DNA of 64,000 nucleotides from Anthoceros angustus (lineage: Eukaryota; Plantae; Anthocerotophyta), in NCBI GenBank assembly GCA_010909165.1, contig VJWM01000025.1:1054001-1118000 (forward strand), written 5' to 3'. Below, piece after piece: positions 1-37,259 of the stretch. Each line of letters begins with the position of its first letter. Position 1 is the first letter of the stretch. The notes beneath the pieces were generated by a model, which did not search any database, was not told where the DNA came from, and saw nothing but the letters and a program-made list of their open reading frames with translations. The position numbers were made by a program, and so were the translations under genes.

Positions 1-2330
1 CCTGTAAGTGGCCGCTGCCAAAAGATGAGCGAGGGCAAGGGCAATCATCACGTTGCTCCTTTCACGTTTGCTCTTAGCGAGCCTCGGCCTTGGTACGCGC
101 CCTCATTAATTGTATTGTGGTCCCAGCCCCCTTAATTGTGCATGATTATCCTGCGGGCTTCCTTAAAGCCCTGCACATGTCTGCCAACAAACACCAACAC
201 TTGGGTGTATGCAGATGGCATAGGACCCTTGCAATGTAATGTTCGCTGTTGTAACTTCCTTTTCCCAGAATCCAATTGGGGACTTGTTCTTGATTTGTTA
301 ATCGTTCTTGCAGGTAAGCCGATGACTCATTCACTTGGCTCACACTAATGACAGAGAATTAAAATGAGTGAATCAAAGTGCCTTGAGTGGCGAGTGGTGG
401 AGGGGGGTGATAACCGAGGACGAGGCTTTAATGAGCACGCAACGGCATTTAGTGCCTGCAGGCTAAATATAAAGGGGAAGCAATCAGCGGTCCCGCTAAT
501 CCTGCTGATATTGTGCAGCCCGAGCCAGCCCGAATCGGGACGCGGCCCAGTTTGGGCCGCGTTTCCGCCCACCTCCGCTCAGGTAACTGTCACACCATCA
601 ATTCGAGCTCCCTGGAAGCGCTTTCACTTCGCGCCTTGCTTTGAGCTTTCCGTGCTGCATTTTTCCCAATCCTCCAAGCTTGTTCTAACAGCACCGCGCC
701 TCCGGCTTGTGCAGACGAGAACATGCGCGCAGCATAACTCAACTCGCATCTGGTGCATTACTCGGACAGAAGCGAGTTGCGGCGCATCTGCGTGGTGTGC
801 AGCAAGCGGCAACACTTCTGTCCGTCCTGCAACAGCTTCATGTGCCTCGGCCCCTGCTTTGTCAAGCATCACTCCGGCTGAGCTCAGCTTTCAGACTGTC
901 AGAGGCCATCCGATTCTGTCCTCTTCCTCCTCCTCCTCCTCCTCCTCCTCCTCCTGGCACTGCCTGATCAGCGAGGCTAGGTACTGGTAGTAATCTTGCC
1001 CCGAGCATCGGTGCATAGCAATTTTGGTTCGCATTCAATTTCTATCCAATCTTCTGGAGGACGAGCATCCAGGGTAGGATTCGAAATGTAACAAGTTACC
1101 ATACCTTAGAGCCACCATTCCAGCCTCGTGCAGGCGCAGGCCTCCTGGCCTTCAATCCGTCGGTGCAGGACAGCACAAATCATCCTGTTCAGCAACTGGT
1201 GCCAGTGCTGGAAATGGTGCGTCCTCATCCACAACCTTGTACATTCCTCCACACCTAATACTTCTACATCAAGCAATTCAACACTTTCTTTGCTCCAGGT
1301 CATCAGATTTCCATTTCGTCATTGTGAACTTGTGCTCCTTTCTTTCACGATTCTGTTCTCTTGGCAATGCCTTCCTCTGCAGAAAGCTATACCAGCTTAT
1401 CTCCAAGTCGCAAACTGGCATTGGTTACTTTTTTGCTCAGGATTCAAGGACAGTGTGGCTCACGACACTCGCATTCACAGCTACTCGCTGTGTCCACACA
1501 AATCACGAGCTTCCCTTGTCATCATCAGACACATGTTGGCACTACCTCTTATCTACAATATACCCTCGTCTATACGAGTCTATCTATTCTAGCAGCTGTT
1601 GTAACACCATGCAAAATATGCAAAACCAAAAATGGAAAAGCATGCATTGGGTGCTATGAAGCTAGGTGTCCAATCGGGCAGCAGCCGGCATTGATGAAGA
1701 AGCGAATATTATCGGTGGCTAAATTTATAATAAGCAGGGTTGATGAGCTTGTGGGATGGCAGCCTGTAAGTGGCCGCTGCCAAAAGATGAGCGAGGCAAG
1801 GGCAATCATCACGTTGCTCCTTTCACGTTGCTCTTAGCGAGCCTCGGCCTTGGTACGCGCCCTCATTGTGTATTGTGGTCCCAGCCCCCTTAATTGTGCA
1901 TGATTATCCTGCGGGCTTCCTTAAAGCCCTGCACATGTCTGCCAACAAACACCAACACTTGGGTGTATGCAGATGGCATAGGACCCTTGCAATGTAATGT
2001 TCGCTGTTGTAACTTCCTTTTCCCAGAATCCAATTGGGGACTTGTTCTTGATTTGTTAATCGTTCTTGCAGGTAAGCCGATGACTCATTCACTTGGCTCA
2101 CACTAATGACAGAGAATTAAAATGAGTGAATCAAAGTGCCTTGAGTGGCGAGTGGTGGAGGGGGGTGATAACCGAGGACGAGGCTTTAATGAGCACGCAA
2201 CGGCATTTAGTGCAGGCTAAATATAAAGGGGAAGCAATCAGCGGTCCCGCTAATCCTGCTGATATTGTGCAGCCCGAGCCAGCCCGAATCGGGACGCGGC
2301 CCAGTTTGGGCCGCGTTTCCGCCCACCTCC
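1..2330. repeat. Direct duplication, period ~1762 bp: 1-576 is repeated at 1763-2330 (first copy truncated by the window edge)
   Basis: cctgtaagtggccgctgccaaaagatgagcgag occurs at 1 and 1763. The ORF track shows identical peptides at 136/1894 and 146/1904. The copies diverge after cccacctcc (576 vs 2330) and otherwise differ mainly by small indels. Confidence 0.95.
364..881 (+). pseudogene. piggyBac-type C-terminal Cys-rich zinc-finger exon, copy 1 (exon 715-881, putative upstream exon 364-582), with a 1-bp and a 3-bp deletion
   Basis: After the acceptor gtgcag| at 714, the exon reads TRTCAQHN-(-1)-NSHLVHYSDRSELRRICVVCSKRQHF-CPSCNSFMCLGPCFVKHHSG*. The donor cag|gtaact at 583 gives a 132-nt phase-0 intron. 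The exon is 167 nt versus 171 nt in copy 2. Confidence 0.7.
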
Positions 2331-3597
2331 ATCTGTCGTATGCGTGGGAATGGCAAGCAATGATGCAGCAATCCAGGGAGCGGGGTCACATGCGCAGCGG
2401 TGGCCGCGGCCCACAGTTGGCCGCGCCTGGACGTAACCAGTTTCCCTTCCACGGACTGCCGCTCGCTCGCTCGATCATTCATTCAAGGTAAGGTGGATTG
2501 TATACAGCCCAGCGTGTACCCGACTCACATTCGCCCTGCCCCCTTTGTCCACATCAATTCCCGCACCACATGTTTCCGCCGCGCGCTCCCGCCTCCGCTT
2601 TTCGCACTATTGCACACTGGACACTGCACTTGCCTAATAACCAGGCCTGCCGCCTGCTATGCCACACACCTTCTCTCGCTAGTACCAGCTAGCTAGTAAC
2701 CACCGCTAAAACAACGTCACTTTCCACATCACCCAACACCAACACCCAACACCCAACACCCAACAATCTACCCGATAAAATCATAACACCAACTTAATAT
2801 AGAACCGAACCCTTAACGGTTATGTAAATCTTTCATGATCGTTAAGGATGTTGATGTTTTATCCCAAATATATATTATTTTTTAAATATCAATCATTATT
2901 CAATATAATAATATAAATATTAAATAAATAAATAGAAGTAAATTAAATTTTTAGTTTACTGAACTTAAGACTAATTTTATAATTGAAGATCGACCATGTT
3001 AAGGTCGTTCATCACAATTAGAAACCTGAAGAAAGGGGAGCAGAGATTTCCAATTTTGTAAGAGATAAGTCCTCCATCTTCAAAATCTTAAAAATTATCC
3101 AAGGCGAAGAAACTTAAGAACAATTTTTTTTATCACTAAGAAAATCATGAAAATTATCTTGGCTTCTAACCTGGATGTTATTGAGACCCTACCATATTTC
3201 AATGAGGATTATACATATTTTTTTAAGAAGAAATTGAAAGATTATGAAAGAGATTGTTAGTCCCGCATTTCAACCAAGTGCGAAAACTTTCCAAGTTAAA
3301 AAATAGTATTAATTAGTACATGTGGAAAGAGATGTATATATCAAGGAAAGAAGTTAGGACTACTAGAGAGGAGGTTTTAGAACAATATTTTAATTTGAAT
3401 CATTTTAATCATCTTATGTACACATGGCTTAGTCTTGGATGTTATCATGACCTTTAATCGATGAATACACAATCAAACTTGTCACCTTTACAGTTTCAAA
3501 TATCAGCTTTAAAGAGTTGGAATCATGACGCTATGAAGAAGGGGCTAAGTCAACATGGACAAGATGTACGAATTATTGAGTAAAACCCAAACTTTTT

Positions 3598-3830
3598 TTG
3601 AACTTTTAAGTCAATACAACTAACTTTTTAATACGTGTTACTAACCTAATTATTTACTGATTTTTGAACTTTTAAATCAATACAATTAACTTTTCAATAC
3701 GTGTTACTAACATAGTTATTTACTCTACATTGGAACACGAGATGAAAGAATAGTAGAGTGAAAATCAGTAAAATATACTTTACTTGAACTTTTAAGTCAA
3801 TATAACTAACTCAATATTTGATTACTAACA
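3598..3830. repeat. Three dispersed copies of a ~48-bp AT-rich motif (ttgaacttttaagtcaatacaactaac...ttactaac)
   Basis: Copies at about 3598, 3664 and 3784, read directly from the sequence. Confidence 0.85.
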
Positions 3831-4574
3831 TTATTATCTACTTTCCATAAAAGAGAGCTCAAAAGGAAAATTGTTGAAGAGAGAAAATTTTCTTGAAACC
3901 ACATCCGAATACACGAGCCCAGGCTCAAGCATTGATGAAACCAGCAAAAGCAGTGAAGCCAAATCATATAGCTAGTAGTGGCGTTCATGAAGCTAACATC
4001 AGCCTTTCCAACATCAAACCACGAATTTGGAAAATAAAATTTGACTTCAAGACATATCCGTCCTCTCTCTCCTACTTCCGCAAACTGCGTCAAACAATAT
4101 GTAAAAGAGGGACGGCTTCGAAAATCCATCCCGGACTGTTATTATACAAAGCGAAAAGATGCATACAAGGTGATTATGTTGTCACAGCGTGTAACTCATG
4201 AAGTTAATTTGTCTAGTATGAGGAATATTTTGAAAATGGTCTAAGAAGCCACCGGGCGGGACCCATAAGCTAAGCTAATAAGTTGGAGCTATGCTGCGTC
4301 GTGCGTGAGATCCAAAGTCATAGCTACATATCTACTTCATTTGAATATAGTTTGATTTACAGATTAGAGCATGTACGCTCCACTTCATGTATGTCATTGA
4401 TCCGCCATGGACCACTCTAAGTATAACAAGTCTCTCTCTCCCTTATGTACAGTACAGCTTATTAAAAGTGTAAGTCTGAATAATCTCATTATTTGATGAA
4501 GCAAGTACCAAGTTCAACAACAGGACCAAGACCCCTACGTAGGTCATTGCTTACTAGTTGTGTCTATGCTCACT

Positions 4575-4685
4575 ACCTCCCGCAACATGGGCCATTATGG
4601 TTTTGTGGAAGTTGATGAAGCCGACGTCAAGTTTTTGAACACCAAACATCAGAGATTGGAAAATAGAACTGTAGAAGTAAACCCT
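4575..4685 (+). pseudogene. Fragment resembling the C-terminal half of an RRM (RNP1 to last beta strand)
   Basis: SRNMGHYGFVEVDEADVKFLNTKHQRLENRTVEV resembles the hnRNP-A/Musashi pattern RGFGFV.F......V......H.L.G..VEV. No RNP2 half or complete gene is seen. Confidence 0.4.
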
Positions 4686-5058
4686 GTAAATCTCATACAT
4701 GCAATTCTTTGGCAAAAAAAAAAAATTAATAATATTTTCTTTAATACCACAATCTTTTCATTGTTTTGCAGGCTTGCTGTGACAATGAGACCATAGTCAG
4801 TCTTTCCAATACCAAATATTATAGATTCGAAAACACAAAGAAGAAAGCTAACGATTTCACCGATGAGTCTTTTCGGCAAATTGAAAGAAGCAATCCTAAC
4901 CTTGGCGAAACATGATGCAGAGAGTTCGACGGATGAGGTTTGGAACAAGAAGCATGAGAGTTTGGCTGAAGCCGTTTGGAGTAAGAAGTATGTGGCTGAG
5001 AGACGACGTTTTCTTCTCATTCTTGTCTTGTTGTTGTTGAATAAGTGAGTGAGTCCTG

Positions 5059-5213
5059 CGTTGATGAAGCCAGTGTCAACCTTTGCAATACCAAAAACTA
5101 TGGATTGAAAAATAAAAACTAGAGGAATAAGTCGGCATGTGCCACGTTGATGAAGCCAGTGTCAACCTCTGCAACACCAAAAACTATGAATTGAAAAATA
5201 AAAACTAGAGGAA
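5059..5213. repeat. Two ~70-bp direct repeats, period 86 bp
   Basis: cgttgatgaagccagtgtcaacct...aaaaataaaaactagaggaa occurs at 5059 and 5145. Confidence 0.9.
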
Positions 5214-7207
5214 GGTTAGTTCTTTCATATTTCATATTTTATTGCATCTTCGCATGTCTCATTATGCTGCTGAGGCCAGCGGGCAGAGAGTAAACCGATG
5301 AAGCTAGGGCCTCGCCGATCTAGATTCCACCATTAGCGCCAAAGCCCTATGGGGTGCGCTTAATAATTCTTCCATCGCTATGTGCATGCTGGCTTTTGGA
5401 TGATATATATTTTAACACAGTGCTCATCTGTTCAACAATGATGTTATTAGTGAGCTTATAACTTTCTGTTTTCTGGCGAATTGCTCCATTCAATTTCTCA
5501 TAGCGCTGTCGAGACATGATTGCAACGCCTCTTCCAAGAAAATACAACAAGCCTAACAAAAATAGAAAATTCTGATCAGTCGGATGATACAACAAGCCTA
5601 TGGCTTACTAAGATTTTACTAACCTAAAGAAAGATTTTGGTGTAATACATGCCAATGCAGACATCGTAAGTATCCAAAGGCCCCTTCGCTTTGGATTTTT
5701 CACACCCTCTTACCAAAAGAGTGTGTATGATTGTGCTACAAGTTTTGCCTAGATTTAGAGAGTAGAGTCAGTCGACTTTGCCCAATCTACGAAGTCGAGC
5801 TTAGTTGCTCCCTCGCACAGATTGAAAACATACAACTTTTTGAACTTGTGGGCGTGGATTATGAAATCTCCATCTCACAATCATTCACTCCATGTGCACA
5901 TATGGAATGTGGGAAGTTGAAGGATGTGAGTTTAGCAAGCCTTGTTGAAAGTGATTTGTTGGGAGGAAGTATATGCATCCAAGGTTCGTTGGAGTGTCTC
6001 CTACCATGGATTTGATTCGTGTGTTGGGCTGCGCTGGCTGGTGGCTGGTCGGTGCGCAGGAAGGGATGGGATGGATATCATATATGCGGAATGTGTGGAT
6101 TGCTGGATCTGCGGTTGAGCAGGCCAGTGGCCAGTGCGCAATGCCTCCAATTCCAATCCGGTAAAATGTTTGGAAGCATTGAATGGCAAGGTTTCCGGCG
6201 CCGCCGGCCGAGGCTTGCCGGCTGGCCTGGCCTGGCCTGGCCTGGGCAGCCTGGGCTTTGCTGGGCCCCCGCCGCCTCGGCAGAGCCAAAGACGGCGCGG
6301 GTGGGCCCTCCTGGTTCCGTTAGCTGCAATCGGGGCGGCTCTTTGTCTTTGCGGGAAATGGACCCAGCCACGCGGCGCTCGCCCCGAGATCTGTCTCGGT
6401 TGACCTCACTATTCCACATGCATCCGCATTAACATGGCATGCATACTACGCATACATGCACATCCCCATTCCACATGTCCTTCTACGACAGGAAGCCTCC
6501 AGGAAGGTAAATAATAATATTATATTGGCCCATTTAAGCAGAGCGCAGCAGTTGAGATGCCCGTACCTCGTCTCACGGGCCAACGGTATTCGTACGTGGT
6601 TGCCTTGCCCGCCGTTCCGTCAAAGGCACTCGGTCGTGAAGGCCCGCTTCGGGCCGCCAGGCCTGCCCTGCCCTGCCCTGCCCTGCGCCTGTCCCCCTGC
6701 GGGAACACGCCGTTCCGTTTGCCTGCTGGAAAACGGCCGTACGTGCTGCTTCACGACTGGCGGGTGAAGCGCCTGGGCCTGTCATGGTACATTGTAGAGG
6801 GCGGGACTGCATTTCAATACGCGGCGGCTCATTTAAGAGGAACTGGGCTCTCGGCGGGTCGCGCGGGGCGTTGGAACTCGCTACGGCCTCCAACATCTTA
6901 TTTACGCTCGCTCGCTGCCTTCACGCTCCGTGGCCGCCCTCGCCAGTCTGTGCTGCGTTTTCTTCTGTCTCTCTCGGAGACGCTCTCGGCGCGGTCTGGC
7001 CTGCGCCTGTTCCTCACATGCTTCACGCTGCGCCTCCGAGGCCTCATTCCTGACGCCCGCTCCCCGCGCGACGCCGCCGCGGTGTCGGAATTGGCGCCGC
7101 TCTTTGCGCTCGCTCGCTCGCTCGCTCTGCCCGAGCTGAGGCTCTCGGAAGCTCTGCTCGAGCTGAAGCTCTGAAGCTGCTGCCTGCTGCCGCCAGAGTC
7201 TCGGAGG

Positions 7208-7586
7208 ATGAAGAAGCTGGCCAGAGCCAAAGCCAAGGACAGGCAAGCCACCAGCTCCGCCACGGGCAGCATTCAGGACCACGACTCGCACGATGACGAC
7301 TCCTCCACGCACGAATCCGCTCCGGTGATGCCTCAGCCTTCTCCTTCGTTTCTTCCTGCGCTGTGCTCTTCTGCTCTGCTCTCTTCTCACAATTCTGGCT
7401 CCGGTTTCCCCGCAGATGAGGACGTGCGGCCCGCACAATGTGAACCCGCATTTGGTGCACTACTCCGACAGAAGCGAGCTGAGGCGGATTTGCGTGGTGT
7501 GCAGCAAGAGGCAGCATTTCTACTGCCCTTCGTGCAACAGCTTTATGTGCCTCGGGCCTTGCTTCGTCAAGCACCACTCCTCCTGA
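7208..7586 (+). CDS. Two-exon ~95-aa microprotein ending in a piggyBac-type Cys-rich zinc-binding domain (join 7208-7324, 7416-7586)
   Basis: Exon 1 is MKKLARAKAKDRQATSSATGSIQDHDSHDDDSSTHESAP. A 91-nt GT..pyrimidine-rich..CAG phase-0 intron follows. Exon 2 is MRTCGPHNVNPHLVHYSDRSELRRICVVCSKRQHFYCPSCNSFMCLGPCFVKHHSS*, with pattern C-x2-C-x7-C-x2-C-x4-C-x3-C-F-x2-HH. Purely synonymous divergence from copy 1 supports coding status. The start codon and any further upstream exons are uncertain. Confidence 0.75.
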
Positions 7587-9867
7587 CCAGGCGTCAGCTG
7601 GCGCTACCAGTTTTGGTGTTTCCGGCACTGGAGAGGGAATCCCCGTGATCCAGACCCCGCGTACTCGGTGATTTTCGCACAGACGGAGAAGAGAGAGCAA
7701 GTGTTTTCAACTTTTGTCGCGCAATCTTGGTGCTGTCCCTGCTGCGCCTTTCAGTTCTGCTTAGCTCCGGTGAAGGCGCGGGGATACGGGTTGAGGTCAA
7801 CATTTTTTTGTAACGGATGTAGCTTAGGAGGCTTACGCCATTTCGAAGAGAAGTAGAGACAGATAGCAAGTACACCGAGTCGAGAGCTTCAGACATGCCT
7901 GCAGGAGGATCTTCTACATCATACTTCCGGGATTGCTCTTAGGATACATGTACATACTTCGAACTTGGAGCTTCGTGACAGCAGCAATAAACAAGGCCTT
8001 GAAGCCGCGGGATTGTCATTGATTTGCTTTCGAACGCATCTCACTTTCTGTTCCTCGGGACTTCGTTCTTGCCTGCCTTCTTGTTCCTTCGGATGATTAC
8101 GGTCTTAGCCTCCGGTTACCACAGTCTTGGTTTCTGATGTCACACGCTCAATTGAGCCAGCAGTGTTGGATCTCGCAACTGTGGCCACATTCTTTGGATG
8201 AGGATCTTTTTTACCTCACATGACTAAGTGGGACGCACTACTTCATCGACTCGGAGGACAGTCAGCACGACAATTATAGCATGATTTCGTTGTGCGTTGG
8301 AGCTCTCTATCTTCACGCCCTTGTGTGGATTCGCAGCAACGGCACAGGAGATGCAGTCACTCTTGGACAGGCTGCTGTTCCTCGCCTTGTCTGCCTTTCA
8401 TCATCAGCTGCAGCCTGCCTGTCTTGCTCTTTGCTGCTGAGTTTGCCATGGAGGAAGTGTAGCAGTACCGCAGCACGCGGGTAAGCAGCAAGATAAGACA
8501 GCAGACATGATTCCCCTGAATCGCTGCTTCCACCCGATGTCGACAGCCGGAAGCCGGATTTGATGCAGCAAGGCAGGCTTCATTCAGCCTCGGATGCTTG
8601 CCTGGTACGGAGCAGGAACACGTAATGATGGCGACGACGCGGAACGCTCCAGCCAGCGCCGCCTTCTGTCGGGATGACGGAGATGGAGAAGACAAGACTC
8701 AAGTTCCCCGTGAGCGCAAACAGGTCTTGCCGGATACGTTTGGACTCTTGTGCTTCAACAACACCACCTCTGATTTCCTTTTTCCATGCATCACCTGTGT
8801 GATTGGTGTGCTGCCAGATCCTTGCTGCGCCGGAAGCCCTTGGAAGCGCAGCGCATGCATTCATCACGTCTTTCCGCCTTTTTGTCGGTTGTCCTTTCAC
8901 CACACTCCTCTACAGGTGTATGCCAGATCTATGCCGGTGCACTGCAGGCTGTAATCGCAGCCTCCGGCTCCGAACTTCACCATGTTGCGGCTCCGCACTG
9001 GGTCTCCCATTCCGGCTGGGGATTGCATGGTCTTGATTATGTAGCTGTGTTTTCCAAGTTCCTCCCTCAACCCTCAACAAATCAGGGTCTCGTTTAACAC
9101 TGGGGTTTGGATACTCTCTACAGTCCAAACTACGCACTCCGCGGGGAGAAGTCATTGGTCGGAAGCTGTGGAACTTGGTGTGTTGCAAGTCTTGTGTGTT
9201 CTCTTTTTATTTGCGTCTTTCCATGTGTCATGAATTGCGGATGGCGTGGGTACCACGGTTGGAAGCAACCCCTTGTTTGTCATTGTTGCTTATAGTATGG
9301 TTGTCTATCCCTAAACCAGGTTTGCCTAAGTAAGCGTGTGACTAGTGGCCAATCCTCCGTTTGACGTGTGTGGTTGTCAGAGGATCCTGTCTCATGTGCC
9401 CTCTGCTCATTGTTCGAAGATGCAAATACTGGTGAGCCCCGCACTCCGGTAATATTTCAACCTCACAGCAAAAGGTAGGCACCTTGCCTTGGGTTGCAAC
9501 TTGCAACAGCAACTTGAACAGGACAATGCGGCGCTTGGCGCAAAAGCAGCTGCACACTCTTCGGTCCTTATCTAAAATTCTACCTTGGGTTTATGAAAGC
9601 TCTTTCACCACTTAATACTGGGCCAGTGCTGGGCAACGAGGAATCCTAGCGCTCTGAAAGTATGAAGTCTAGACATTTAAGCACTTACACCAAGTTTTTG
9701 CCACGTTGGATTGTCTTACAGGATATGGCCACCTCATTGGGAGAGCGTGCAACCCCCTCAGGTTAGAGCCTTGTGTAAGCACAAACTGGTGAACTAGTGG
9801 CAGGATCACAAATTCCAATCCCTTGTCTGCCAGCTTCTGTGAATGCTCGCTCCCCGGCAGCTTGTAG

Positions 9868-12800
9868 ATGAATCTTTGTTGGAAAAGATGCGAGCACTCG
9901 CGGAGGATGGAGAGCGGCCGACGCCGTCCGTTTTTCACGCTCCCCAAGGACCGGATTTTGGTCAGGGTTGATTGCGCCCAGGCTCGTGGTTCAGGCACTG
10001 CAGTGCAATCCCCTACGGAGTCCAGCTCCGAACAGGTATGTTGAAATTGCATCTGGGCATCTTGATAAGTTGTGCTTGAATGTCTGCTTCTGCATCTAAT
10101 TTTACCAAGTGGTGTTGCAGAGGGATATAGACAGGCAATTGGTTGTGGTCGGAGGTGGAGCAGCTGGCATATTTGCCGCTCTGAGGGCGAAACAAGTGTC
10201 TCCCCAGTTGAAAGTCCTGGTGCTCGAAAAGGGACAGCCTCTTTCCAAGGTTGCTGAATAACACTCCCGTCATCCACCTTTTCCAAAGTTATTCCGCATG
10301 ATCTGAAAATCCAGAAAGAAATTCGTGTCATAGGTCAGAATCTCCGGTGGTGGTCGCTGCAACGTAACCACGGGCTTGTTCGTCGATCCCTTGGTAAGCC
10401 TCTCTGGTCCTTGCTGTACCGGCATGGTCGTTTTTTTTTCTTTGGTTGCTGGGGCAACTTTCAATGACCTTTGCTTGGATGGCCTCTCCTCCATCAGCCT
10501 TTGTCAGAGCAATATCCCAGGGGCCACAAGGAGCTCAGGGGGTCCTTCTTTCGTACTCACGGGCCCAGGGAAACCGCAGCCTGGTTTGCTGAACATGGAG
10601 TACCACTGAAGGTATGAAATGCTGAATCCATATATCGGCTTCGTTTTTTGGCCACCCTGGGAGATGATAGCTGGTGGTGGAAAAGCAGATTGAGGAGGAT
10701 GGTCGCATGTTCCCGGTTAGCGATAGCTCAGCCACCATAGTGGATTGCCTTCTGACAGAGGCTCAACGCCTTGGAGGTATTTGCTGAGAGCAGTCTTCCT
10801 GTGTTGTGCTCTTTCAGCTCTCAGTTTGCATGAGGGTCCTTGGTCTGCTGCTGCTGATGCTTCTGCTGCCGTCCTCTCCCAGTATGCTTGCAAACAAGCA
10901 CATCTGTAACTGCTGTGCACTTGAGGAACAGCGAAAGATTTTCACTTGAGACTGGCAGTCTCCTACGACGTAAGGAGACAATTTCAGCTGATTTTGTCCT
11001 TTTAGCAACAGGGAGCTCCCCTCAGGTACTTCACAGCAGTCCTGCATGTATAGCATAAGTTGTCGCCTGCTCAGCTGATGATTTTATCTCCTTTCACCAG
11101 GGCAAGGCGGACGGATTATAAGTTCAATGACCTGTGTTGGGCTTTCATCTTTAAAGCCGCAGGAAATTCTGCCTCTTGGTGACTTGCTAACCTTGAGTTC
11201 TGACCTCAGGGGTATCGCTTGGCGAAACAGCTAGGGCATTCTATTGTAGATCCGGTTCCAAGTCTATTCACGTTCAAAATCGAAGACCCTGCTTTGCATG
11301 AACTTGCTGGGGTAATACTCTTCAACTGTGTTTGCTGGCCTCTTCGCCCTGCAAATTGTAGTGTTTCTGCGAAGTGTGTCACAAAGAATCAGCCTCTTTG
11401 GTTTTGTGTCTCTGGACAGGTCAGTTTTGCACAAGTGAAGGCAGAACTTCAAGTTTCTGGAATCGAGCATTCCAGCACAAATTGGACCCAAGTAAGCCAG
11501 TGGCTTTCCCTCTTAAAAATGCAAGCTTGTTTTGCTTGGTGGATCTTTCTGGCAATCCATCCTAAACCCATCCTGTATAACCTAAGGACAACGAACTTGT
11601 AATCACGTAGGCTGGTCCACTTCTGATAACGCACTGGGGACTCAGTGGCCCAATTGTGCTCCGCCTCTCAGCCTGGGCTGCCCGTCAGCTTTTCTCATCT
11701 GACTATGAAGGTACCAGGTTTGGCTGCTGTTTGTATCCAAGTGTGAGGATCGGCTTGTCAGAGGTCTGACGATGTCCACTTGGTAGGTAGGTGTCTTGTG
11801 GGTTGATTTCATGCCTCACCTAAACTCAGAGAGTGCCTTGGACAGCTTCTTAAAGCACAAAGAGTCATTCATGGTGCGTACACAACTGCCCCTCCTCACC
11901 TGCTGCAGATAGAAGATCGATACCTCCATTTGGTGATCTTTTTACTTCTGTAGGTTTTTGAGTAGAGTGTGGCTACCATCTTCATACACACCATACCAGG
12001 CGATGGTCTGTGCAGAAGCGTAAAGTAGGTAGCCTGGCTCCAGCTAGTCTTGCAACAGTTCGACGAGCGTGGCATTATCTCCTTAAGAAACAGGTCTTGC
12101 CGGCTCTCTTTTACCTTCACTTGTCTTCAGTGAAGTTCGTGGTCTTTTTGTAATTTGCCGTCTTAAATGCTAATGCTCTCTAGTTTTTGCCTAAGGGTCT
12201 TGATGCAGACATGTTGTGGGCAGCACTACCCAAAAAGAGCATCACTCAGCTAGTGTCCAGGATAAAAAAATGCCCGTTCCACATCTCTGCTAAGGCAAGT
12301 TGATGACGCACACCATTGATGGCAATTGAAACCCAGTAAGTATTTAGGCTGATAAGTCAGTATCCTCGTTTGGAATTCAGGGACAATTCAAGGATGAGTT
12401 TGTGACGGCAGGAGGGGTGCCACTGACTGAGGTGTCTTTCAAACGGCAGTCATCCGATTCCGCTTAAATTTACATAGGTTGGTACGTACCCAGCTTACGA
12501 GGCTCTCTGCGCAGGTGAACCTGAAGACCATGGAGAGCAAAACCTGCGAACGACTCTTCCTCGCCGGCGAGGTAGGCCTTCTCGGTTCTCCACCATGGTC
12601 TCATAGAACATGTGACAGTATAATAAGCGTCGCTGAGTAGCTGCGTTGGTGCGCGGCAGATATTAAACGTTGATGGCTTGACAGGTGGCTTCAACTTTCA
12701 GGTACCGTATAGATCTTTGTCGTTTTCTATAGAATTTGCAAGCCGCTGTACTGTATTTTCGAGTTGGGTAGCTAGATATACTGTTTACCTTGTCCGCCCG

Positions 12801-12883
12801 TATCCTTGCAGAATGCCTGGACTGGTGGTTTCATCGCAGGCTCCACAATCGGCGAATTGGCAGCCCTAAAAACAAATTATTGA
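9868..12883 (+). CDS. HI0933/YhiN-family NAD(P)/FAD-dependent oxidoreductase (flavoprotein), multi-exon
   Basis: Spliced exons give [14 protein letters not shown] (FAD GxGxxG), [114 protein letters not shown] and a TGA at 12881-12883. The start is at 9868 or 9907. Confidence 0.93.
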
Positions 12884-13122
12884 AGGCCGTTACTACGTTG
12901 TAGTGCATCATCCCGCACCAAAGTGTACGTGTCTACATCGTATGTACAGACAGTATGTGCATACCATGTGTGGATAAAACACCTCGTCAAGTTGCTGACC
13001 GTCGGCGACTGGGTCTCTGACAATATCAAGCACGTGGAGAGCGGGCCTCGACCGCAATTATAGGTGCGAGGTATCTACTTCAACGCCACATTGGCATATT
13101 GCCTGCGTTCTAGTTCGATTTC

Positions 13123-15369
13123 GTGAGTTGCATGCGCCTCACCTCCATGGCGCTGCTAGGATCGTTGGTTGGTAGTTGTCTGACTGAGGCTGCTCTGAAA
13201 TTGGATAGGGACGACCATTTTTGCAGTCGCCGTTGGGATTGTTTGCTCGTCACAGCACCATCTCGGAGGCGCGCTTCTCATTTGCCAAGCCATTCTAGCA
13301 GGCATGCTGGAATTCTCCACCATGGCCGGCCTGTTTGTTGGGCGAAATCGAAGTGGAACAGTTTCAGTGTTCACAGGAGGAACACAGTACTCTGCATTGC
13401 CACAAGACCCGACCCTGTGGCGGCTGATGAGGCGGAAGCAGAAGGGGAAGCCGCTTATGATAGCAATGCACAGCCTCCCGCTGCCAGGCTGACTCCCACC
13501 TGGAGGCGGGCGGGCAATCTTGCCTCCCGATGGCGGGAAATTGCAGGCGAGAACAACTGGGAGGGGCTGCTGACACCATTGGACCCCGATCTCAAGAGGG
13601 AAATCATGAAGTGCGGGGACTTCATCTGGCCTGGCTACGATGCTATGGACGACATTCCTGAGTCCAGGTACAGGGGCAGCGCTCTCTATCACCCGTCCAA
13701 GCTCTTGGATAAGGTGAGGCTGCATGGTACGGGGTACCAGGTGACCAGGTACTTGTACATGCTGTCTGATGTGACTTGGGTCGACCGGTTTGCACCATAT
13801 TTCCAGCTTCCCGTGAGTGGTCAGGATGGTGAGCTCTGGGCCAAGGACAGCAACTGGGTCGGACTGGTTGCTGTGGCAACCGATGAGGAAGCTCAACGGC
13901 TGGGAAGAAGAGACGTCATTGTCTCTTTCCGCGGTACGCACACAGCCAAGGAGTGGGTGATGAACGTCTATGATTGGCTGCTGCCGGCGCAGAAGGCCGA
14001 TGCCAGCGTGCCCTGGCCGGACGTCGTGAAGGTGGAAGCGGGATTTTGGGAGATGTTCACTGGAAAAGCGGAAGACACGGTGTACAACAAGCTCAGCGCA
14101 GCCGAGCAAGTCCGTGAGGAGGTCATCCGGTTGATCAACAAGTACCAGGGGGAGGAATTGAGCATCTCGGTAACTGGGCATAGTCTCGGGGCGGCCCTAG
14201 CCGTGCTGTGTGGATACGACGTTGCTTACAACGGAGCCAATCGACTTCCAGCAGCGGAACCATCTGAGGTGGGTACATTCGATGTATGTAGGGACACGCC
14301 CTCAGCTTCTGAAGGCTGCCAGATGAATCTCACTGTGTTCTGAGATTTTGATGTTCTGCACAGGCTGCAATAGGAGGAAACACGGTGACTGGAAAAGTGA
14401 TCAAGGAGTTGGTGCAAACTGTTAAAACAATAATTCCAGGTGAGTCTGAACGAGTCTGGACTACATGCTGCTCCACCATCGTCCTAGCTCTGCTGCAATC
14501 TCCTTACACAAATCTGTTCTCTGCAGGTCTCACAGCCGAGAAGAAAGAGATTCCGAAGGGGTTTCTGCCTGGAACAGTGCCCATCACAGTATACACTTTC
14601 GGGTGCCCCCGTGTTGGAAATGACGACTTCCGAGATACCATCCATGCTCTTGGTGTAAAGGTATCACCAGTCTCTCAGCACTCTGCTGATACCATTGCCC
14701 AGAGTTTCTACTGCAATCAACTTGCCAGCACCACTTTCACGCTCAAACGCGCACGTTTTTTGCAGATTCTCCGTGTAGAAGGGGAGGGTGACATCGTGAC
14801 CCGGTTCCCTGGCGTGTTTTTCAATGAGTGGATTTTGAATGGGGCCGATAAGTGGTTGGGTCTCTTCTTTGACAGCTTGCCTTGGACATACATACATGTT
14901 GGTGTTGCGCTGAAAGTTAACTACAAGGACTCGCCTTACTTGAAAGCCAAAACGAAGTTCATGGATGTGCACGATTTACAGGTTAACCTCCATCTGATTG
15001 ATGGCCTCGGCGAGGTACGTCACAGTTGTATTTCCACACACTTCACTGCCTGCTGAAACGTTTTGGGTTCCAGAACTTCAGAGTTAGACGCATGTGAGGA
15101 ACATACATACTTGTGTTCTGACCCCAATGGTGTACTTGCAGCCGCCAAGCCTGGAGAGATTTAATCGCAACTATGACGAGAATAGGAGGGACTTTGCGCT
15201 TGTGAACAAGTACATTGGTTTGCTAGATCCCAAATACAGAATCCCTGAGGGATGGTTTCAGCTTGAGAACAAGGGCCTCGTCCTCAACCTAGAAACTGGT
15301 CGATGGGAAGTGCCCAATCGTGAATCGATCGATGAGCCTGTCAATTTTGTAGGACCCATTGATAGATAG
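13123..15369 (+). CDS. Class-3 lipase / phospholipase A1 (DAD1-like, PLA1-I type), multi-exon
   Basis: WREIAGENNWEGLLTPLDPDL, NWVGLVAVATD, LGRRDVIVSFRGT, nucleophile motif ISVTGHSLGAALA, ITVYTFGCPRVGN, DIVTRFPG, HDLQVNLHLIDG, RRDFALVNK and a TAG at 15367-15369. The exact start is uncertain (13123 or 13147). Confidence 0.92.
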
Positions 15370-15582: not shown

Positions 15583-17272
15583 TTAATAGGTGTAACTGCC
15601 TGCTTCGGGCCTGAGCCTCCAGTCCTCCAGAGATTGCGCAGTTAGCCACCTCCAGGTGTCCTCAGGCATCTCCACATCGCTGCAGAAGAGTGTGCAAGCC
15701 GGCAGAGTTCCCGTATCAATACTGGAGACGTTCACGTCAGCGGTCCCTTTCTTGCATCGTTGCCGGGGGTCGGTGAGCACAACCGGTTCGAAAAGAGGAC
15801 CTCTGTCGCATAGCTGTTCCTGTGTAGGATTCTTCACCAGGCCTGTGTTTTCGATGATGCTTTCATATGTGCTCATGAGCACGGCGAGGGAGAGGAGATG
15901 GCCTTCCGAGCTACACATCCACTCCAACTCGTCGTGTGCACGGTCGGCCATGGCTTCCATTTCCGCGTCATGTTGTTGCATATATTCGATTCTTTCAAGC
16001 AGGTCAGTGAAACTGCAAGAAAACGACACAACCAAGAGGAATTTCAGTCACTTAGGATGGATGCAAAAGTCAAGAAAGAAATGCAGCAAAGCCAGGAAAG
16101 GGAACGTACTAGTGAGAAGTCTCTGCGAAATGCTTCATAGGCCTTCTGAGAGGCGAGTAAAAGCTGTAGTAAGGGGTCTCTTGCTGTATCAGGACGCGCT
16201 TACTGATAATGGCATCACAGAAGAGCGAGCTGCTGTTGAAACCTCCATCCAGAAGCAGCTCGTACTTGTATTTCAGCTTGTCTGTGAAGTTCATACGTGC
16301 ACCAACCTCGATGCCTTGCTCCTCAAGCTCCGCCCGGTGCTTGTCATTCACATGATTCCATGAATCAACCCGGGCATCAAGCAATGTCGGATGGAAGTCG
16401 GTGAGCCTATGCAGCCTCCATTGAGGCGTGGCCTCCAAGCTCCCCGTGCGCCAGTGGTAGACCGCAGACGGTCCTCTGAACACCGCCCTAGCCTCCTTCT
16501 CTCTCCAGGAAATCTCGGGTGCATCCGGTACACTCATCCCGAGGAGAAGCGGATCTGGAAGCGGCACATCTAAGTTCACCGTGGTGGTGAAGGTGCTGAA
16601 GATGAGGAAGCCTGCGTAGTTGATCGTCAAGCTGCTGTCTGACGACATAGGGAAGTCGCAAGTGTTGAACAGCAGCTCCACCCGCAGGTCCTTCATATTG
16701 TATCTATCCACCATTGCCTCCAACGCCAGCACCATGCCATTGGCGCGTGCCAGCTGATGCGCATTGCCGGTGAAACCACCGTATCTGAAATACACTCTCC
16801 CGCTCACAATGCGGATATGCACACAGCACTCCATAAACCTGGGCTGCGTAGCCGCTCCCCGCACCGCCTGGACCTTCCACGTCCCCCGGCTACCGAATCC
16901 TTGTTTGATGTTCGGGATAGGCATCCAGCTCCCGAAGTAGAACCTCGCCAGCTTCAACAGACTCACAATCCTGGGATCCGACAGCTCCACCGTGTCCGGA
17001 TCCATCCTCAGAGCCTCCCATGCTTCCCTGGGAACCTTTTCAAAATGCACAGCCTGCCAAAACTCCTCCCCCCGGCTCGCCACCTGCCCTGCCTCCTCCT
17101 CCTCTACCGGAAAGCGGTCCACAGGTGCAAAGAAGACAACCGCGAGCACCGTGAAGAGCGTGAACATGATGATGAGCGAGCTCGGAGGCCATGGCCGCAG
17201 CACTGAGCAAAGCCACCGGCTTGGCATCCTTCCAGCAAAGCTCTCTTCCAGAAACGCAAGCTTCTGATTCAC
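15583..17272 (-). CDS. GT90 / CAP10-like glycosyltransferase (KDELC/POGLUT-like), type II membrane protein; intron 16013-16109
   Basis: N-terminal TM segment SLIIMFTLFTVLAVVFFA. Motifs include LRVELLFNTCDFP, DVPLPDP, WREKEARAVFRG, LLDARV, KYKYELLLDG and VLIQQETPYYSFY. A phase-2 intron (ta|gtacg...gcag|t) joins to YFTDLLERIEYMQQHDAEMEAMADRAH, the typical GT90 C-terminus. Confidence 0.88.
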
Positions 17273-19399: not shown

Positions 19400-22300
19400 C
19401 AAAGGGGTTAGATTCGCAAAGGGATCAGAAGTCATCTACAGTCTAATGCAGCATGATAAATTCACCATTGCATATCATTTTAATTTATTTTCAGTTGTTT
19501 CGAACGAACCATTTCTCTCGAAGTAACTGTCCAGGAGAAGTCCAGAGTGTTGCACATTTGTCATGGTGTCACGCATTCGATAGATTGTTTTACAGTTTCC
19601 AGATTGCTATTACCCAGCACAAATATAGCAGATCTCTCTAGAATTTATTCCTCAGCAAACGTGGGCTCTGAGAATCTAGTATGAACAGTGCTTTGCCTTC
19701 ATACAAACGACGTTCCAAACCACGATTGTTCGAATCATTGCTGCAGGTACCTGTTTCGCAACACTCAATTTCAAATGTGGGCACGACGAAAAGTGGGCGC
19801 CCTCAATTTCTTCTCACCTGTGTAGTGTGTCGGCCACACGACTGGAGAATCGTTCTGGGGGAGGAGCTTGTTGAGCAGGAAATCGAATCGCTTGTCACCC
19901 ATAAACCAGTGAAATTGTTGATGGCATGTATCTTCATGAGAAGCACACAGCGCTAACTATCATACAGTCAGGACTGTCGTCTAAGGCACCATCGCAGAAA
20001 GGCTGTGCGAGCAAACACAGCTGTTGCTGGTCCTGTCAAGTATGTCTGATTGTCATCATCTTGCCAAACAATTTGCAAAGGAAAGTTGACAGTGCATTTC
20101 TCTGTCCAGGAATTAAAGAACGTCAAACCACATTATCAAGTGGACAGTACCACATCAATAGAACTCAAGTGTGCACACTAACATCATACAACCACACTTA
20201 CCCAGTGATCAAGACCGTCCAGTTCCCCTGCCACATGTAGGCCTGTCAATCAAACACGATGTCTTCTTTCTAGTTCTTTCTACCTCCCTTACCCAGCTCA
20301 TTCCCTTCGCTCACACAAGCATTTGCACGTTGGGAAATCGAAAGTACTTGCATGAGTCTGTTAACAGAAGGGTTTGGGTAAGTAATTTTGTTGCTTAAGC
20401 AAAAAGTAGGCGGGGAAGCTGTGTGCAATGCAAGTGCGCTTTCCTGCTAGAAAATCCGCTTGTTTGTCAACGACGAGACCACCTTCTGCCAGTGGCAAAA
20501 GCATGTCAAGAGCAAGCAGAGTACCACAGTCGACACTGAGACAGAAACGTACAAAATCCTACTCAAGAAAGTCATTCCAAACGTCTTGTGGAGATGGAAC
20601 TCGATCGTACGTCTATACCCTGCTCGATGTATGTCACACATTCAGAATTTCCCGTCCTGATACAGGTCACAATCCATTTCTTGCCAGCCACCACCAATGA
20701 TGTTCATCCAACTGAGTAGGGACCCTTCCAGGGAACGTCAGCTGGTTTCAAGGTAGCTGGCCCCATCCATATCCACTCCGATCTGTTGAATATTCGCTAA
20801 GGTGAATAGTGTCTAGAATTTCACGGCAATACACCGAAACGCCCAACCCAATACCTTGCATAAGAAACAAGCTTCTTGGAAGGTTTACAGCAAGAAAACC
20901 TGACCATGAGAGTCTTCTGCGTCCATGACAGATATCATCTAAATCAACTGACAGTATTGCTTCAATCAGGGGTGCAGCAAGGCCATGTTCAATCGCTTCT
21001 GGGCACTCCAAAGCAAATTCCCCTTCACTTCAGAGTGCTAAGGATATGCCTCCGAGATTCTGATGTGTTACACAACTTGGCAAGAACTTGAGCCACAAAC
21101 CGGATCCCACTGCCACACATCTACCAAAGTTACACCACAAGCATAGCAATCAGCTCGAGGAGAAAAGAGTCGCATTGGACAAACAATCTCAGGATCACGA
21201 CCATGCCAACGAAAGCAGTAGCCATGCCACTCACTCCATGCCACGTTTGAAAACTTTAGATGACTCCCTCTACTCCACTCCAAGTCCAAAGTTACGATCA
21301 GTTTAACGACTTGTGCTTCTGCGAACTTCGGCTCCAAGCCAGGAACATGCTCTCCGCTTTACACTCCCAACCACCAACCCACCGGGTACCCACAGTCAAC
21401 CAAAATCATTACCCTCATCCTTTGATGTCCTTAGGGTCTCCCGTTGATGTCCTTTGGTAGATGGGTAAACCCATCTCCTCTTTCCTTAACAAAAACCTCA
21501 CCCTCATCAAGGTGCACAGCTTTTCTGCAAAAAGTCCTTGACAAGTTCATGATGTAAAGGTCTTCCCCACGCTGAGAGAGCAACTTATTGTTCCGCCATG
21601 CACTGCCTGCTCACAACCACATAGACCACAGATTCCACAGCCAAGACTACCAACATTCGTGCAACGAACGTAAACTCTAGAAGCATGAAAATAGCGGCCG
21701 GCGATCCGCATCGCTGCCGCAGCCATGACGCCAAGGATAGTATTAGTGAGGACATGCACGAGGACAGCTAGAGTGCAGGAACAGGGAATGCGCCGCTCTC
21801 AACCATCGCCCTCCAACTAATTGGCTGAGCTCAATAAAATCTGAATTCCGTTCACTTCCAGAATCACTTCACTCAAAACTGGCAAGATGATTCCAAGTCG
21901 CCAGGTACTTCATGCCCCGAAGCAGGAACATGGGTTAGTCTCGCAGACCACGACCACAACCATTTCACCCACGACCATTCGCCCCCCATAAACGGAACTA
22001 GAAGATACAGACAAATCCTGCATATACAGCTCACCTCACCGCTACGCTGTGAATGTTCAACTTTTCTCCACCAGCTGGGAAGACCAAGCCTCGTGAGTGT
22101 TCTGACTCCTCCACTTCGCTCCACTGCAGCGTCTCAAGTGGACTACAGACTGTAAAGTCGATTTGCACCTCTAGACTGCAGTGCACAGGTGCAAGTCAAG
22201 AAGCTACCAAGCATACCCATCTACGAGTAGCCCTCACCTTTGTCCATTGCAAGTGCGCTTTCCTGCTAGAAAATCCGCTTGTTTGTCAACGACGAGACCA

Positions 22301-25300
22301 CCTTCTGCCAGTGGCAAAAGCATGTCAAGAGCAAGCAGAGTACCACAGTCGACACTGAGACAGAAACGTACAAATCCTACTCAAGAAAGTCATTCCAAAC
22401 GTCTTGTGGAGATGGAACTCGATCGTACGTCTATACCCTGCTCGATGTATGTCACACATTCAGAATTTCCCGTCCTGATACAGGTCACAATCCATTTCTT
22501 GCCAGCCACCACCAATGATGTTCATCCAACTGAGTAGGGACCCTTCCAGGAACGTCAGCTGGTTTCAAGGTAGCTGGCCCCATCCATATCCACTCCGATC
22601 TGTTGAATATTCGCTAAGGTGAATAGTGTCTAGAATTTCACGGCAATACACCGAAACGCCCAACCCAATACCTTGCATAGAAACAAGCTTCTTGGAAGGT
22701 TTACAGCAAGAAAACCTGACCATGAGAGTCTTCTGCGTCCATGACAGATATCATCTAAATCAACTGACAGTATTGCTTCAATCAGGGGTGCAGCAAGGCC
22801 ATGTTCAATCGCTTCTGGGCACTCCAAAGCAAATTCCCCTTCACTTCAGAGTGCTAAGGATATGCCTCCGAGATTCTGATGTGTTACACAACTTGGCAAG
22901 AACTTGAGCCACAAACCGGATCCCACTGCCACACATCTACCAAAGTTACACCACAAGCATAGCAATCAGCTCGAGGAGAAAAAGGGAGTCGCATTGGACA
23001 AACAATCTCAGGATCACGACCATGCCAACGAAAGCAGTAGCCATGCCACTCACTCCATGCCACGTTTGAAAACTTTAGATGACTCCCTCTACTCCACTCC
23101 AAGTCCAAAGTTACGATCAGTTTAACGACTTGTGCTTCTGCGAACTTCGGCTCCAAGCCAGGAACATGCTCTCCGCTTTACACTCCCAACCACCAACCCA
23201 CCGGGTACCCACAGTCAACCAAAATCACCCTCATCCTTTGATGTCCTTAGGGTCTCCCGTTGATGTCCTTTGGTAGATGGGTAAACCCATCTCCTCTTTC
23301 CTTAACAAAAACCTCACCCTCATCAAGGTGCACAGCTTTTCTGCAAAAAGTCCTTGACAAGTTCATGATGTAAAGGTCTTCCCCACGCTGAGAGAGCAAC
23401 TTATTGTTCCGCCATGCACTGCCTGCTCACAACCACATAGACCACAGATTCCACAGCCAAGACTACCAACATTCGTGCAACGAACGTAAACTCTAGAAGC
23501 ATGAAAATAGCGGCCGGCAGCGATCCGCATCGCTGCCGCAGCCATGACGCCAAGGATAGTATTAGTGAGGACATGCACGAGGACAGCTAGAGTGCAGGAA
23601 CAGGGAATGCGCCGCTCTCAACCATCGCCCTCCAACTAATTGGCTGAGCTCAATAAAATCTGAATTCCGTTCACTTCCAGAATCACTTCACTCAAAACTG
23701 GCAAGATGATTCCAAGTCGCCAGGTACTTCATGCCCCGAAGCAGGAACATGGGTTAGTCTCGCAGACCACGACCACAACCATTTCACCCACGACCATTCG
23801 CCCCCCATAAACGGAACTAGAAGATACAGACAAATCCTGCATATACAGCTCACCTCACCGCTACGCTGTGAATGTTCAACTTTTCTCCACCAGCTGGGAA
23901 GACCAAGCCTCGTGAGTGTTCTGACTCCTCCACTTCGCTCCACTGCAGCGTCTCAAGTGGACTACAGACTGTAAAGTCGATTTGCACCTCTAGACTGCAG
24001 TGCACAGGTGCAAGTCAAGAAGCTACCAAGCATACCCATCTACGAGTAGCCCTCACCTTTGTCCATTGCCAACTCGTCAGCCTGAGCTCACGTCCACGTG
24101 TCCACCACTGAAAGACCTGGCATGTTGTCCACAGGCAGTTAGCCTGAGCAGACCATCTCCATCCAGTCCAGAGCGGAAGCAAGACGAGAGCTAGGCTTTT
24201 CTAGCTGGAGGTGGTTCACGACTTCAGTACCCTGCTGCAAGCAAACTGTTCACCGGAATATACCTGGATCAGTTCAGACTCTCAAACCATAGGTGTCAAA
24301 TTGTGCTACTCCATGAGCACAACAATGTTCCAGAAGAGTTCGTGACAAAGATGGCATTTCTGACCAGTACGAGACACACTGACTTCACTGATCCAGGAGG
24401 AAGAGTCACTCCTGTTGCAGAAAGTCAGATGCATGGCAGCTGTTTCTCGAGCAGCCCTTGTGAGCAGTTCCTTGCCTCCTCTCACCGTGCAAGCCGGGAT
24501 CCCTTGCAGATGCGTACATTGAGGTGAGGTGTAAACACGCTATTATCTCCAGTCTCTCCATTAGGTACCCCAGGCTAGTTGATGAGTCCACTCAACCAGA
24601 AGGATCAGATTCTAAGCTCCAAAGAGAGACAATTCGCCGCAAAGCGCGCAAATTTTTGTCAGCAGCAGATACGCAATTGATCCAGGCTCCAACCTTTCTC
24701 ATGGCGAGTTGCGCGACAGCAGCAGGCAACTCCTGGCCAAGCTCACCCATTACCAGTTCTATGTAGACAAACAATGTAGACAGACCTGACAGGCTGACAA
24801 GTATGAAGGCTTGCGCAGACCTGTCAAGTATGGTCGCATGATCGATGAACCCGCGGAATGTGCCAATCTTCACCGATTTCAACAGCCTTGTCGGAAGGTC
24901 TTGATGAAATCTGTGGAATAACATCGCCATGGCGGACGGACGTTCCTGATTCACAAACGATTACGATTACAAACACAACGATCCTCGTCAGAGTCCAAGG
25001 ACCGACGATTCAGTTTCACGTATCATTGAACTTTGCAGCCTCTAACGAACGGGCGAGATGCGACCAAACTTGGAGGTGCCGATTGCAGGCTGCCGGCAGG
25101 CGCAGTGAAGTGGTACAATTGCAAGCTTGCGTCAGCTATCTGTTACAGTGCGTCAGAGCCAGCAGATGCATGAACAGTTCCAAAATCATTTCCAGCTGCT
25201 GATCAGAAGTGGCTGCCTAGACAGTTCACCCCGGATCCCACAGCTTGCTGAATCTGTACAAAAATCTGCATATCTCTGGCTAGCAGACACTGTGCTAGAT

Positions 25301-29900: not shown

Positions 29901-30580
29901 TTTCCATGGTCCATGTTGGGCCGCTGCGTGAGTGAGATTTCGGCGCGGCGCGCCATCTCCTTCTCGTTGTCTCCCAAAACAAAACCTCGACTACCCTGCA
30001 GATCACGGTCGGAGAGAAAAAAATCGAGCCGCCCTCGCGCTCCACGCCTCCTCGCGAACTTGCGGCGCCGATTTCTCTCCCGCCCGCTGCACGATCGTCG
30101 CCTTTCCTCCTGCCCGAGGCAGGTGCTTTGGCGGCGTCGTGGTAGCGCCCCTCTTCTGCTCGCTCCGTGCCCCTCACGGAAAGTCGCGACCTCGCGGTCT
30201 TTGGGTGTGCCCTTCTCCCGGTTGCGCTCCGGTGGTAGTCCCGCTCCGCCACTAGGGTTGTAAATTCCCACAGTGCATGCGTCCGTTTCACCGTGGTGGA
30301 ACTAGCCACCACCCCTTGACTACCTGGTGGCATATTGTGAGCATCCCTAGCATATATAGACACCTTTTATTCTAAAATTCCCAATACCCAAGGACTCTAT
30401 TTCTACCCCACCTCGGGGTCAAACCTAAGGGTCGAAAAATTATTATTATCTCCAAGGGCCAAGGACCATTCCGTATAAAAGACTCGACGATTCTCAAAGC
30501 ACTCTATTCTAACACATCCAAAACAAAAAATCGTTCACCACGACACTTGGAGGCGGTTAGTTCACATGTGGTCTTCCATA
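27000..30580 (-). repeat. 3' LTR of the gypsy element (3581 bp)
   Basis: Begins tgtggaatgggtttttgcat and ends gtggtcttccata. It is colinear with 36433-40124 and followed by ctcccttctc (the PPT on the minus strand). Confidence 0.93.
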
Positions 30581-37208: not shown

Positions 37209-37216
37209 CTTATACA
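37209..37216 (-). promoter_or_regulatory. Candidate LTR TATA box (TGTATAAG)
   Basis: The same motif is at 27763-27770 in the other LTR, and a cttatac motif lies at ~55647 in the related solo LTR. It sits about 0.6-0.8 kb from the U5 end and downstream of the embedded ORF. The role is inferred from position only. Confidence 0.4.
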
Positions 37217-37259
37217 TCTGGGTGGTCCAACACGGCTCACTTCTCTTTAGTGTCTAAAA

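Follow-up and report, generated by a model that had tools for sequence, protein, structure and literature searches.

The locus at 7208-7586 on the forward strand of the 64-kb segment of the Anthoceros angustus genome analyzed here (the window, 64,000 nt in full, to which all coordinates refer) raises the question of why a zinc finger of the kind that closes piggyBac transposases is encoded by itself in a land plant, and whether it belongs to the host or to a decaying mobile element. According to the survey of Bouallegue et al. (2017; PMC5381638), piggyBac is found in eukaryotes "except in plants", in agreement with the preliminary description of the locus, in which this superfamily had been called atypical for seed plants; plants are listed among the PBLE hosts in PMC8086355.

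Gene Model of the First Copy

The 56-codon exon of the preliminary description is present, with the quoted peptide, as a 56-aa ORF at 7416-7586 (+) ending with TGA, and its assignment as a terminal exon draws on the ORF itself, phmmer, the alignment designated A3 and Atlas neighbours. Approximately 11 residues on its N-terminal side are piggyBac linker; the rest is the cysteine-rich domain (CRD). Sequence reading and a script placed a predicted first exon of 39 codons at 7208-7324 (+), a model derived from a single sequence: its ATG at 7208 is the earliest one past the in-frame stop, and the encoded peptide is basic on the N-terminal side, then acidic and Ser-rich. The same approach gave a predicted GT-AG intron of 91 nt at 7325-7415 (+), pyrimidine-rich, with the donor CCG/GTGATG at 7324/7325, a CTCAC branch-like site and the acceptor CCCCGCAG/ATG (slashes mark the exon borders). 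The proposed phase-0 junction thus fits both the GT-AG signals and the reading frame, and splicing as predicted would join the two exons in frame into a basic product of 95 aa with a pI of 8.8. An AATAAA motif is present downstream at 7986. Contigs from sequencing runs guessed to be RNA aligned nearby only at 7689-7876 and 9611-9761, without joints; none aligned within 7208-7586 or bridged 7324/7416.

Identity of the Domain

An exhaustive phmmer search against 1.84 billion representative proteins produced 12 matches to the exon at E ≤ 0.001. Four of them, P0006 (E 2.1e-4), P0009 (4.4e-4), P0010 (6.9e-4) and P0012 (8.9e-4), carry DDE_Tnp_1_7 (PF13843) upstream and are matched by the exon at their extreme C-terminus, i.e., in the last ~40-55 residues; two of these, P0009 and P0012, come from Lepidoptera and are annotated as PGBD4-like. 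Short ORFs from metagenomic or Logan contigs accounted for P0002, P0005, P0007 and P0011, and the remaining four were P0003, a protein from a diatom, plus others that are Cys-rich or repetitive. The similarity extends past the finger into the transposase linker, with the common motif (K/G)TC.P ... NP..HY, and the ESM-Atlas feature neighbours of the exon (score 0.94) fall into clusters with PF13842 (zf-Tnp_2) and PF13843. The phmmer matches, the A3 alignment and the Atlas neighbours therefore agree with the earlier proposal that the domain derives from the C-terminus of a piggyBac-type transposase and, judged by its sequence, the terminal exon encodes a piggyBac-type CRD.

The Pfam zf-Tnp_2 match that had been expected was not obtained: the exon gave no PF13842 hit and only sub-threshold matches to ANCHR-like_BBOX (19.8 bits, cut-off 27) and zf-HIT (14.3 bits, cut-off 24.7). 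When PF13842 was applied to 11 A3 members, including four from DDE-attached proteins, a single one touched the model (E 0.14), and the DDE-attached CRDs yielded equal sub-threshold B-box/HIT matches. Because these CRDs score likewise, the silence of Pfam is probably a property of the model and not of the exon, and the PF13842 model apparently does not cover this CRD subtype. A profile search of PDB sequences found nothing significant, the listed matches including ZNHIT3 at E 0.5 and piggyBat, at the right place, at E 4.4.

The putative ligand pattern reads H15...C26-x2-C29-x7-C37-x2-C40-x4-C45-x3-C49-x3-H53, and the block ends in HH. In the A3 alignment C26 and C29 are invariant and C37, C40, C49 and H54 nearly so. 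Such an arrangement was described by Guerineau et al. (PMC8086355) for PiggyMac and for PBLE transposases with similar Cys/His residues, as distinct from the T. ni type, and the upstream His of the PiggyMac-type pattern would explain that the block invariant between the two copies in the window (see below) starts at histidines before the first Cys. The AlphaFold model of the exon had a pLDDT of 71 overall and of 80-89 over residues 21-56. Fold searches with Foldseek against the PDB, the Atlas search and VIA-align returned weak generic cross-brace matches only: the neighbours of the model were HIT, MYND and B-box fingers, 5LME and piggyBat, all of them weak (Foldseek E ≥ 0.16, Z ≤ 4), the top ones by name being ZNHIT1, ZNHIT3 and ZMYND (HIT and MYND fingers). 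With the piggyBat CRD the model shared 32% identity over 40 aligned residues. The predicted fold is compatible with a piggyBac CRD, but not diagnostic of it.

The same observations bear on the possibility that the exon encodes an ordinary host cross-brace finger of the zf-HIT, B-box or MYND type, whose likeness to piggyBac would be a convergence in Cys spacing. The spacing C-x2-C-x7-C-x2-C-x4-C-x3-C-x3-H is nearly identical in these families, and they provided the top Pfam matches (the ANCHR-like B-box and zf-HIT), the top structural neighbours and the ZNHIT3 match of the PDB profile; every one of these matches, however, missed its curated cut-off, and the DDE-attached CRDs scored likewise. 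In the search of 1.8 billion proteins, on the other hand, the matches at E ≤ 0.001 with an informative Pfam domain were piggyBac C-termini, aligned end to end, the kinship with piggyBac tails continues into the transposase linker, and the Atlas neighbours are associated with zf-Tnp_2. An ordinary host finger is therefore considered highly improbable.

The Second Copy and Its Flanks

Comparison of the window with itself by blastn aligned 7412-7586 with 711-881 at 80.6% identity, and no further copy was detected by blastn within the 64-kb window. The terminal exon of this second copy, located at 715-881 (+) by blastn and sequence comparison, begins with ACG, not with ATG. It is preceded by an intron-like stretch of 132 nt at 583-714 (+; GTAACT ... 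TTCTAAC ... TGTGCAG; sequence reading and script) and by a weak candidate for exon 1 of 73 codons at 364-582 (+; sequence reading), which was without a Pfam match and lies almost wholly within the direct repeat 1-576. The likeness between the two candidate first exons is marginal at most (z 2.4) and the downstream flanks of the two copies are unrelated (z 0.1-0.2), and the final ~17-30 nt of the introns before the acceptor are weakly alike (z 3.5). Homology thus ends at the stop codon on one side and ~17-30 nt into the intron on the other, so that the acceptor must predate the split of the copies; in both, a branch-like site is retained and the AG falls at the same codon.

The direct repeat 1-576/1763-2330 is near-identical (1 mismatch, 4 small indels) and flanks a 1.19-kb segment with the second copy; the left arm extends past the window start, and 6 nt separate the end of the repeat from the candidate donor of this copy. 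Because the left arm leaves the window, an LTR pair, a LARD-like element and a segmental duplication are indistinguishable here.

An acceptor common to both copies behind unrelated upstream sequences would also be expected if the CRD were a captured 3'-terminal exon, into which different upstream host transcripts splice and thereby gain a C-terminal finger, as CSB splices into PGBD3 in primates. In such a case, the 95-aa model would represent one or none of the real products. The ACG at the beginning of the second copy fits in, since an upstream exon must then supply the start codon, and exon 1 of the first copy is itself a prediction from one sequence. Against capture, an ATG exon that is in frame and ends with a good donor is situated only 91 nt upstream of the first copy, and no fusion partner with a Pfam domain was found among the frames of ≥60 aa in 1-13000. 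We regard capture by several host transcripts as an unlikely alternative.

The second copy has two lesions. Because of a 1-nt gap near codon 10-11, around 741-744 (CTCAACTCG vs GTGAACCCG), positions 735-737 read TAA in the frame of the finger, and the shared acceptor (714/715) is out of frame; the residues before the gap (TRTCAQHNS) are conserved when read in the acceptor frame. In addition, one Tyr codon is missing between the two CxxC pairs; this Tyr gives the x7 spacing, which every other A3 member shows. Taken together, the frame break and the loss of Tyr mean that at least one of the copies may be dead. The quality of the assembly has to be considered at this point: gap openings exceed mismatches between the repeats 27000-30578 and 36433-40122 (199 vs 113), 20419-22250 and 22238-24069 (6 vs 3), and 1-576 and 1763-2330 (4 vs 1), which suggests indel noise, and therefore single-base frame breaks in this genome are not evidence of pseudogenization without raw reads. 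The 1-nt gap, located in an A-run, may be such noise; for the 3-nt loss of Tyr noise is a less likely explanation. As to the repeat at 20419-24069, it consists of two adjoining 1.83-kb units with 99.2% identity and a 13-base overlap at the junction (22238-22250) and looks like a very recent tandem duplication.

Selection on the Domain

In the block from His12 to Ser55, at 7449-7580 (+) in the first copy, 18 synonymous and 0 non-synonymous differences from the second copy had been counted by hand over 43 codons, and Nei-Gojobori counting gave the same result, with S = 26.5 and N = 105.5 sites. For this block pS was 0.68, dS about 1.8 and dN/dS about 0.01 (dN 0.019, binomial p 3.5e-11) in a test comprising two sequences only, so that the strong purifying selection claimed previously was borne out. 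The constraint is confined to the domain: the 11 leading codons, read in the acceptor frame, are far less constrained, with four synonymous and several replacement changes, and the final codon differs between the copies (Ser/Gly). Selection on the antisense ORF 7044-7700 was excluded as the source of this signal, which is assigned to the forward frame because the third positions of the latter are the first positions of the antisense ORF.

Since the CRD stayed unchanged in both copies at saturated synonymous sites, the domain must have been useful nearly throughout that time. From the ~105 non-synonymous sites, the neutral share of the divergence between the two copies is estimated at less than ~4%. 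On these substitution counts and this estimate, we infer that purifying selection acted after the loss of mobility; the beneficiary of the constraint could be either the plant or a long-lived resident element.

Absence of a Transposon and Relatives Elsewhere

The surroundings of both copies are devoid of a recognizable transposase. The two strands of 1-13000 contain 99 open frames of ≥60 aa; none of them matched DDE_Tnp_1_7, and beyond the finger and two chance-level matches no other Pfam family reached E ≤ 0.01. When five piggyBac proteins and every ORF of the closest element (contig L011) were used as tblastn queries, the two CRD exons were the sole matches across the 64 kb. Both results bear out the earlier statement that no DDD catalytic core is visible nearby. 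Among TTAA-flanked inverted pairs around either copy, none reached 11/14 matches within 12 kb. With looser settings (11/13 matches, within 4 kb) one pair in 234 had a 4-bp duplication, to be compared with about 0.9 (234/256) expected by chance. On the sequence evidence neither copy would thus qualify as a piggyBac-like element, as both are without a core and without TIR and TTAA.

Relatives of the 56-aa ORF were not found by a word-index search, and an exact-sequence look-up was without record; no orthologue or close relative was detected among 15 billion proteins, nor was any relative confirmed by a back-translated scan of the JGI metagenomes. A profile search recovered metagenomic transposase fragments only, of which P0152-P0155 run upstream into the same linker. 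Where the genomic context of a homologue could be seen, it was that of a transposase: on contig L006 the lone CRD ORF P0007 immediately follows a decayed DDE end (9438-9785; E 7e-30 against P0006), with which it forms one continuous but broken frame, and L011 contains a near-complete piggyBac split into four ORFs. All placeable homologues outside the Anthoceros angustus genome are tails of piggyBac transposases, and the homologue ORFs run uninterrupted through the point where the exon in the window has its acceptor.

L006 belongs, together with L001 and L007, to the decayed piggyBac copies of an AT-rich eukaryote (36% GC) represented in public metagenomes by several of them. L001 and L007 are located on one 113.7-kb scaffold and have more than 10 kb of repeat around the CRD ORF in common (82-92% identity). 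The CRDs of this eukaryote (L001/L007/L006) have lost Cys ligands.

In the preliminary description it had been foreseen that all intact homologues might turn out to be the ends of full piggyBac transposases, in which case the selection would predate the truncated copies. The former holds for every homologue that could be placed; the reading of the copies in the window as simple relics that was attached to it is disfavoured by the lack of termini and by the scarcity of neutral decay. Under this reading the two copies would be remains left only recently by two piggyBac lineages that had diverged long ago, selected before truncation and drifting neutrally at present. The tails of intact or decaying transposases on L011 and L006 are in line with it, and so are the frame break and codon loss of the second copy, and short lone CRD ORFs are common as gene-caller fragments. 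However, no DDE remnant exists in the 7.4 kb upstream of the first copy or across the 64 kb, and neither copy has the TIR or TTAA duplication that young deletion derivatives would be expected to retain. Moreover, all 43 residues match between the copies at a saturated dS, compared to 40-54% identity among transposase CRDs, and by our estimate the time of neutral drift in both copies simultaneously would have to stay under ~4% of the divergence; and the frame break of the second copy lies in an A-run of an indel-noisy assembly. Recent relics are, on balance, judged to be rather improbable.

Genomic Setting

The locus sits among ordinary plant genes. Sequence similarity identified a class-3 lipase of the PLA1-Igamma type at 13123-15053 (+) and a GT90 glycosyltransferase gene at 16109-17269 (-), which are arranged tail to tail; the best named relative, from Sphagnum, has only 46% identity. 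The same pair is present in the same order in the Logan contig L012 of a related species (1644-2939 and 5004-6176; 70% aa identity), whose sequence upstream of the lipase ends after 1.6 kb, whereas in the window 5.5 kb separate the lipase from the finger located upstream. Either a short intron or a frame error interrupts the lipase, which therefore appears as two ORFs at 13123-14343 and 14385-15056.

The region 8372-10331 (-) has 90-95% nucleotide identity to contigs of two other organisms, one of them 4.1 kb long with a depth of 309, and includes a 220-aa ORF at 9669-10331 (-) without a Pfam match; it is probably a gene that is well expressed and runs convergently to the finger gene. The interval between the two finger copies contains an AT-rich block (2780-6000, 39-40% GC), in which families of 58-86-nt repeats occur at 3983-5210 and repeats of 35-64 nt at 3591-3811; the block is probably an inserted repeat or transposon of some age.

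Proposed Origin and Function

We consider the locus to be a CRD-only derivative of piggyBac, that is, a spliced terminal exon that was duplicated and has been kept by selection as a domesticated family, and assign to this reading a probability of roughly one half. The 3' end of a piggyBac-like transposase frame, comprising the last ~10 linker residues and the CRD, would have been severed from the DDD catalytic core, placed as a terminal exon behind a splice acceptor, and duplicated afterward. If expressed as modelled, 7208-7586 would encode a basic protein of ~95 aa in which a two-zinc cross-brace finger follows a short, charged N-terminal tail. Such a protein would most likely be non-catalytic and act as a small nuclear DNA binder, with chromatin binding as the alternative, and may recognize motifs descended from piggyBac ends. 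More tentatively, a non-seed land plant might have domesticated the CRD tail alone, as a small multi-copy family of spliced mini-genes with at least two members in the window. Such a family might regulate in a sequence-specific manner or guard against piggyBac-like elements. A role as a trans-acting regulator or dominant-negative of a piggyBac-like element, suggested in the preliminary description, would be a further hypothesis.

Comparison with the CRDs of piggyBac and PGBD proteins (PF13842; 5LME; piggyBat 9C0F; PiggyMac) shows agreement in the homology to the extreme C-terminus behind DDE_Tnp_1_7 and in the upstream His followed by two CxxC seven residues apart and then C, C and H (PMC8086355); the small two-zinc cross-brace fold, if modelled correctly, would be a further common trait. 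In contrast to these CRDs, the exon in the window is free of a catalytic core, starts at a predicted splice acceptor, stays below the PF13842 threshold and occurs in a land plant, a group without piggyBac according to PMC5381638. The computed pI of its CRD is 8.9 and the charge +4, i.e., net positive like that of the DNA-binding piggyBac CRD and unlike the PiggyMac CRD, which is acidic and binds histone H3; the range of CRD functions is covered in PMC8086355.

The domesticated piggyBac genes, such as human PGBD1-5, CSB-PGBD3, Paramecium PiggyMac/PgmL and Tetrahymena Tpb2, are likewise transposase-derived and have lost the element ends. Purifying selection is a further common property, and their use of the CRD as a DNA- or chromatin-contacting module might, by analogy, apply to the exon in the window. 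The capture of PGBD3 by CSB via a splice acceptor is a particularly close analogy. A difference is that the known domesticated genes have kept the whole or most of the DDE_Tnp_1_7 core (PMC5381638, Table 1), compared to ~55 C-terminal residues in the window; in addition, none of the known cases comes from a plant.

Truncated transposase products retaining only the DNA-binding domain are represented by the P-element KP repressor and the THAP-only proteins, and small proteins of this kind could compete for element ends. Their THAP domain is N-terminal, unlike the CRD, and they stem from internally deleted elements with recognizable termini. The copies in the window, in contrast, are without termini and show the conservation of an old gene, not that of a recent deletion product.

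Significance

Domesticated transposases are a recurrent source of regulators, including FHY3/FAR1, MUSTANG and DAYSLEEPER in plants, and piggyBac-derived regulators are represented outside plants by the PGBD genes and PiggyMac. To our knowledge, neither a piggyBac-derived host gene of a plant nor the domestication of a CRD alone has been described. Should the copies be relics after all, they would still document piggyBac-type sequences in a land-plant lineage. If the domestication proposed here is true, the locus would be the first known example of both, in which the end-binding module of a transposase, a zinc finger of ~45 residues, was exapted on its own, and it would make a compact natural domain that binds DNA or chromatin available for study.
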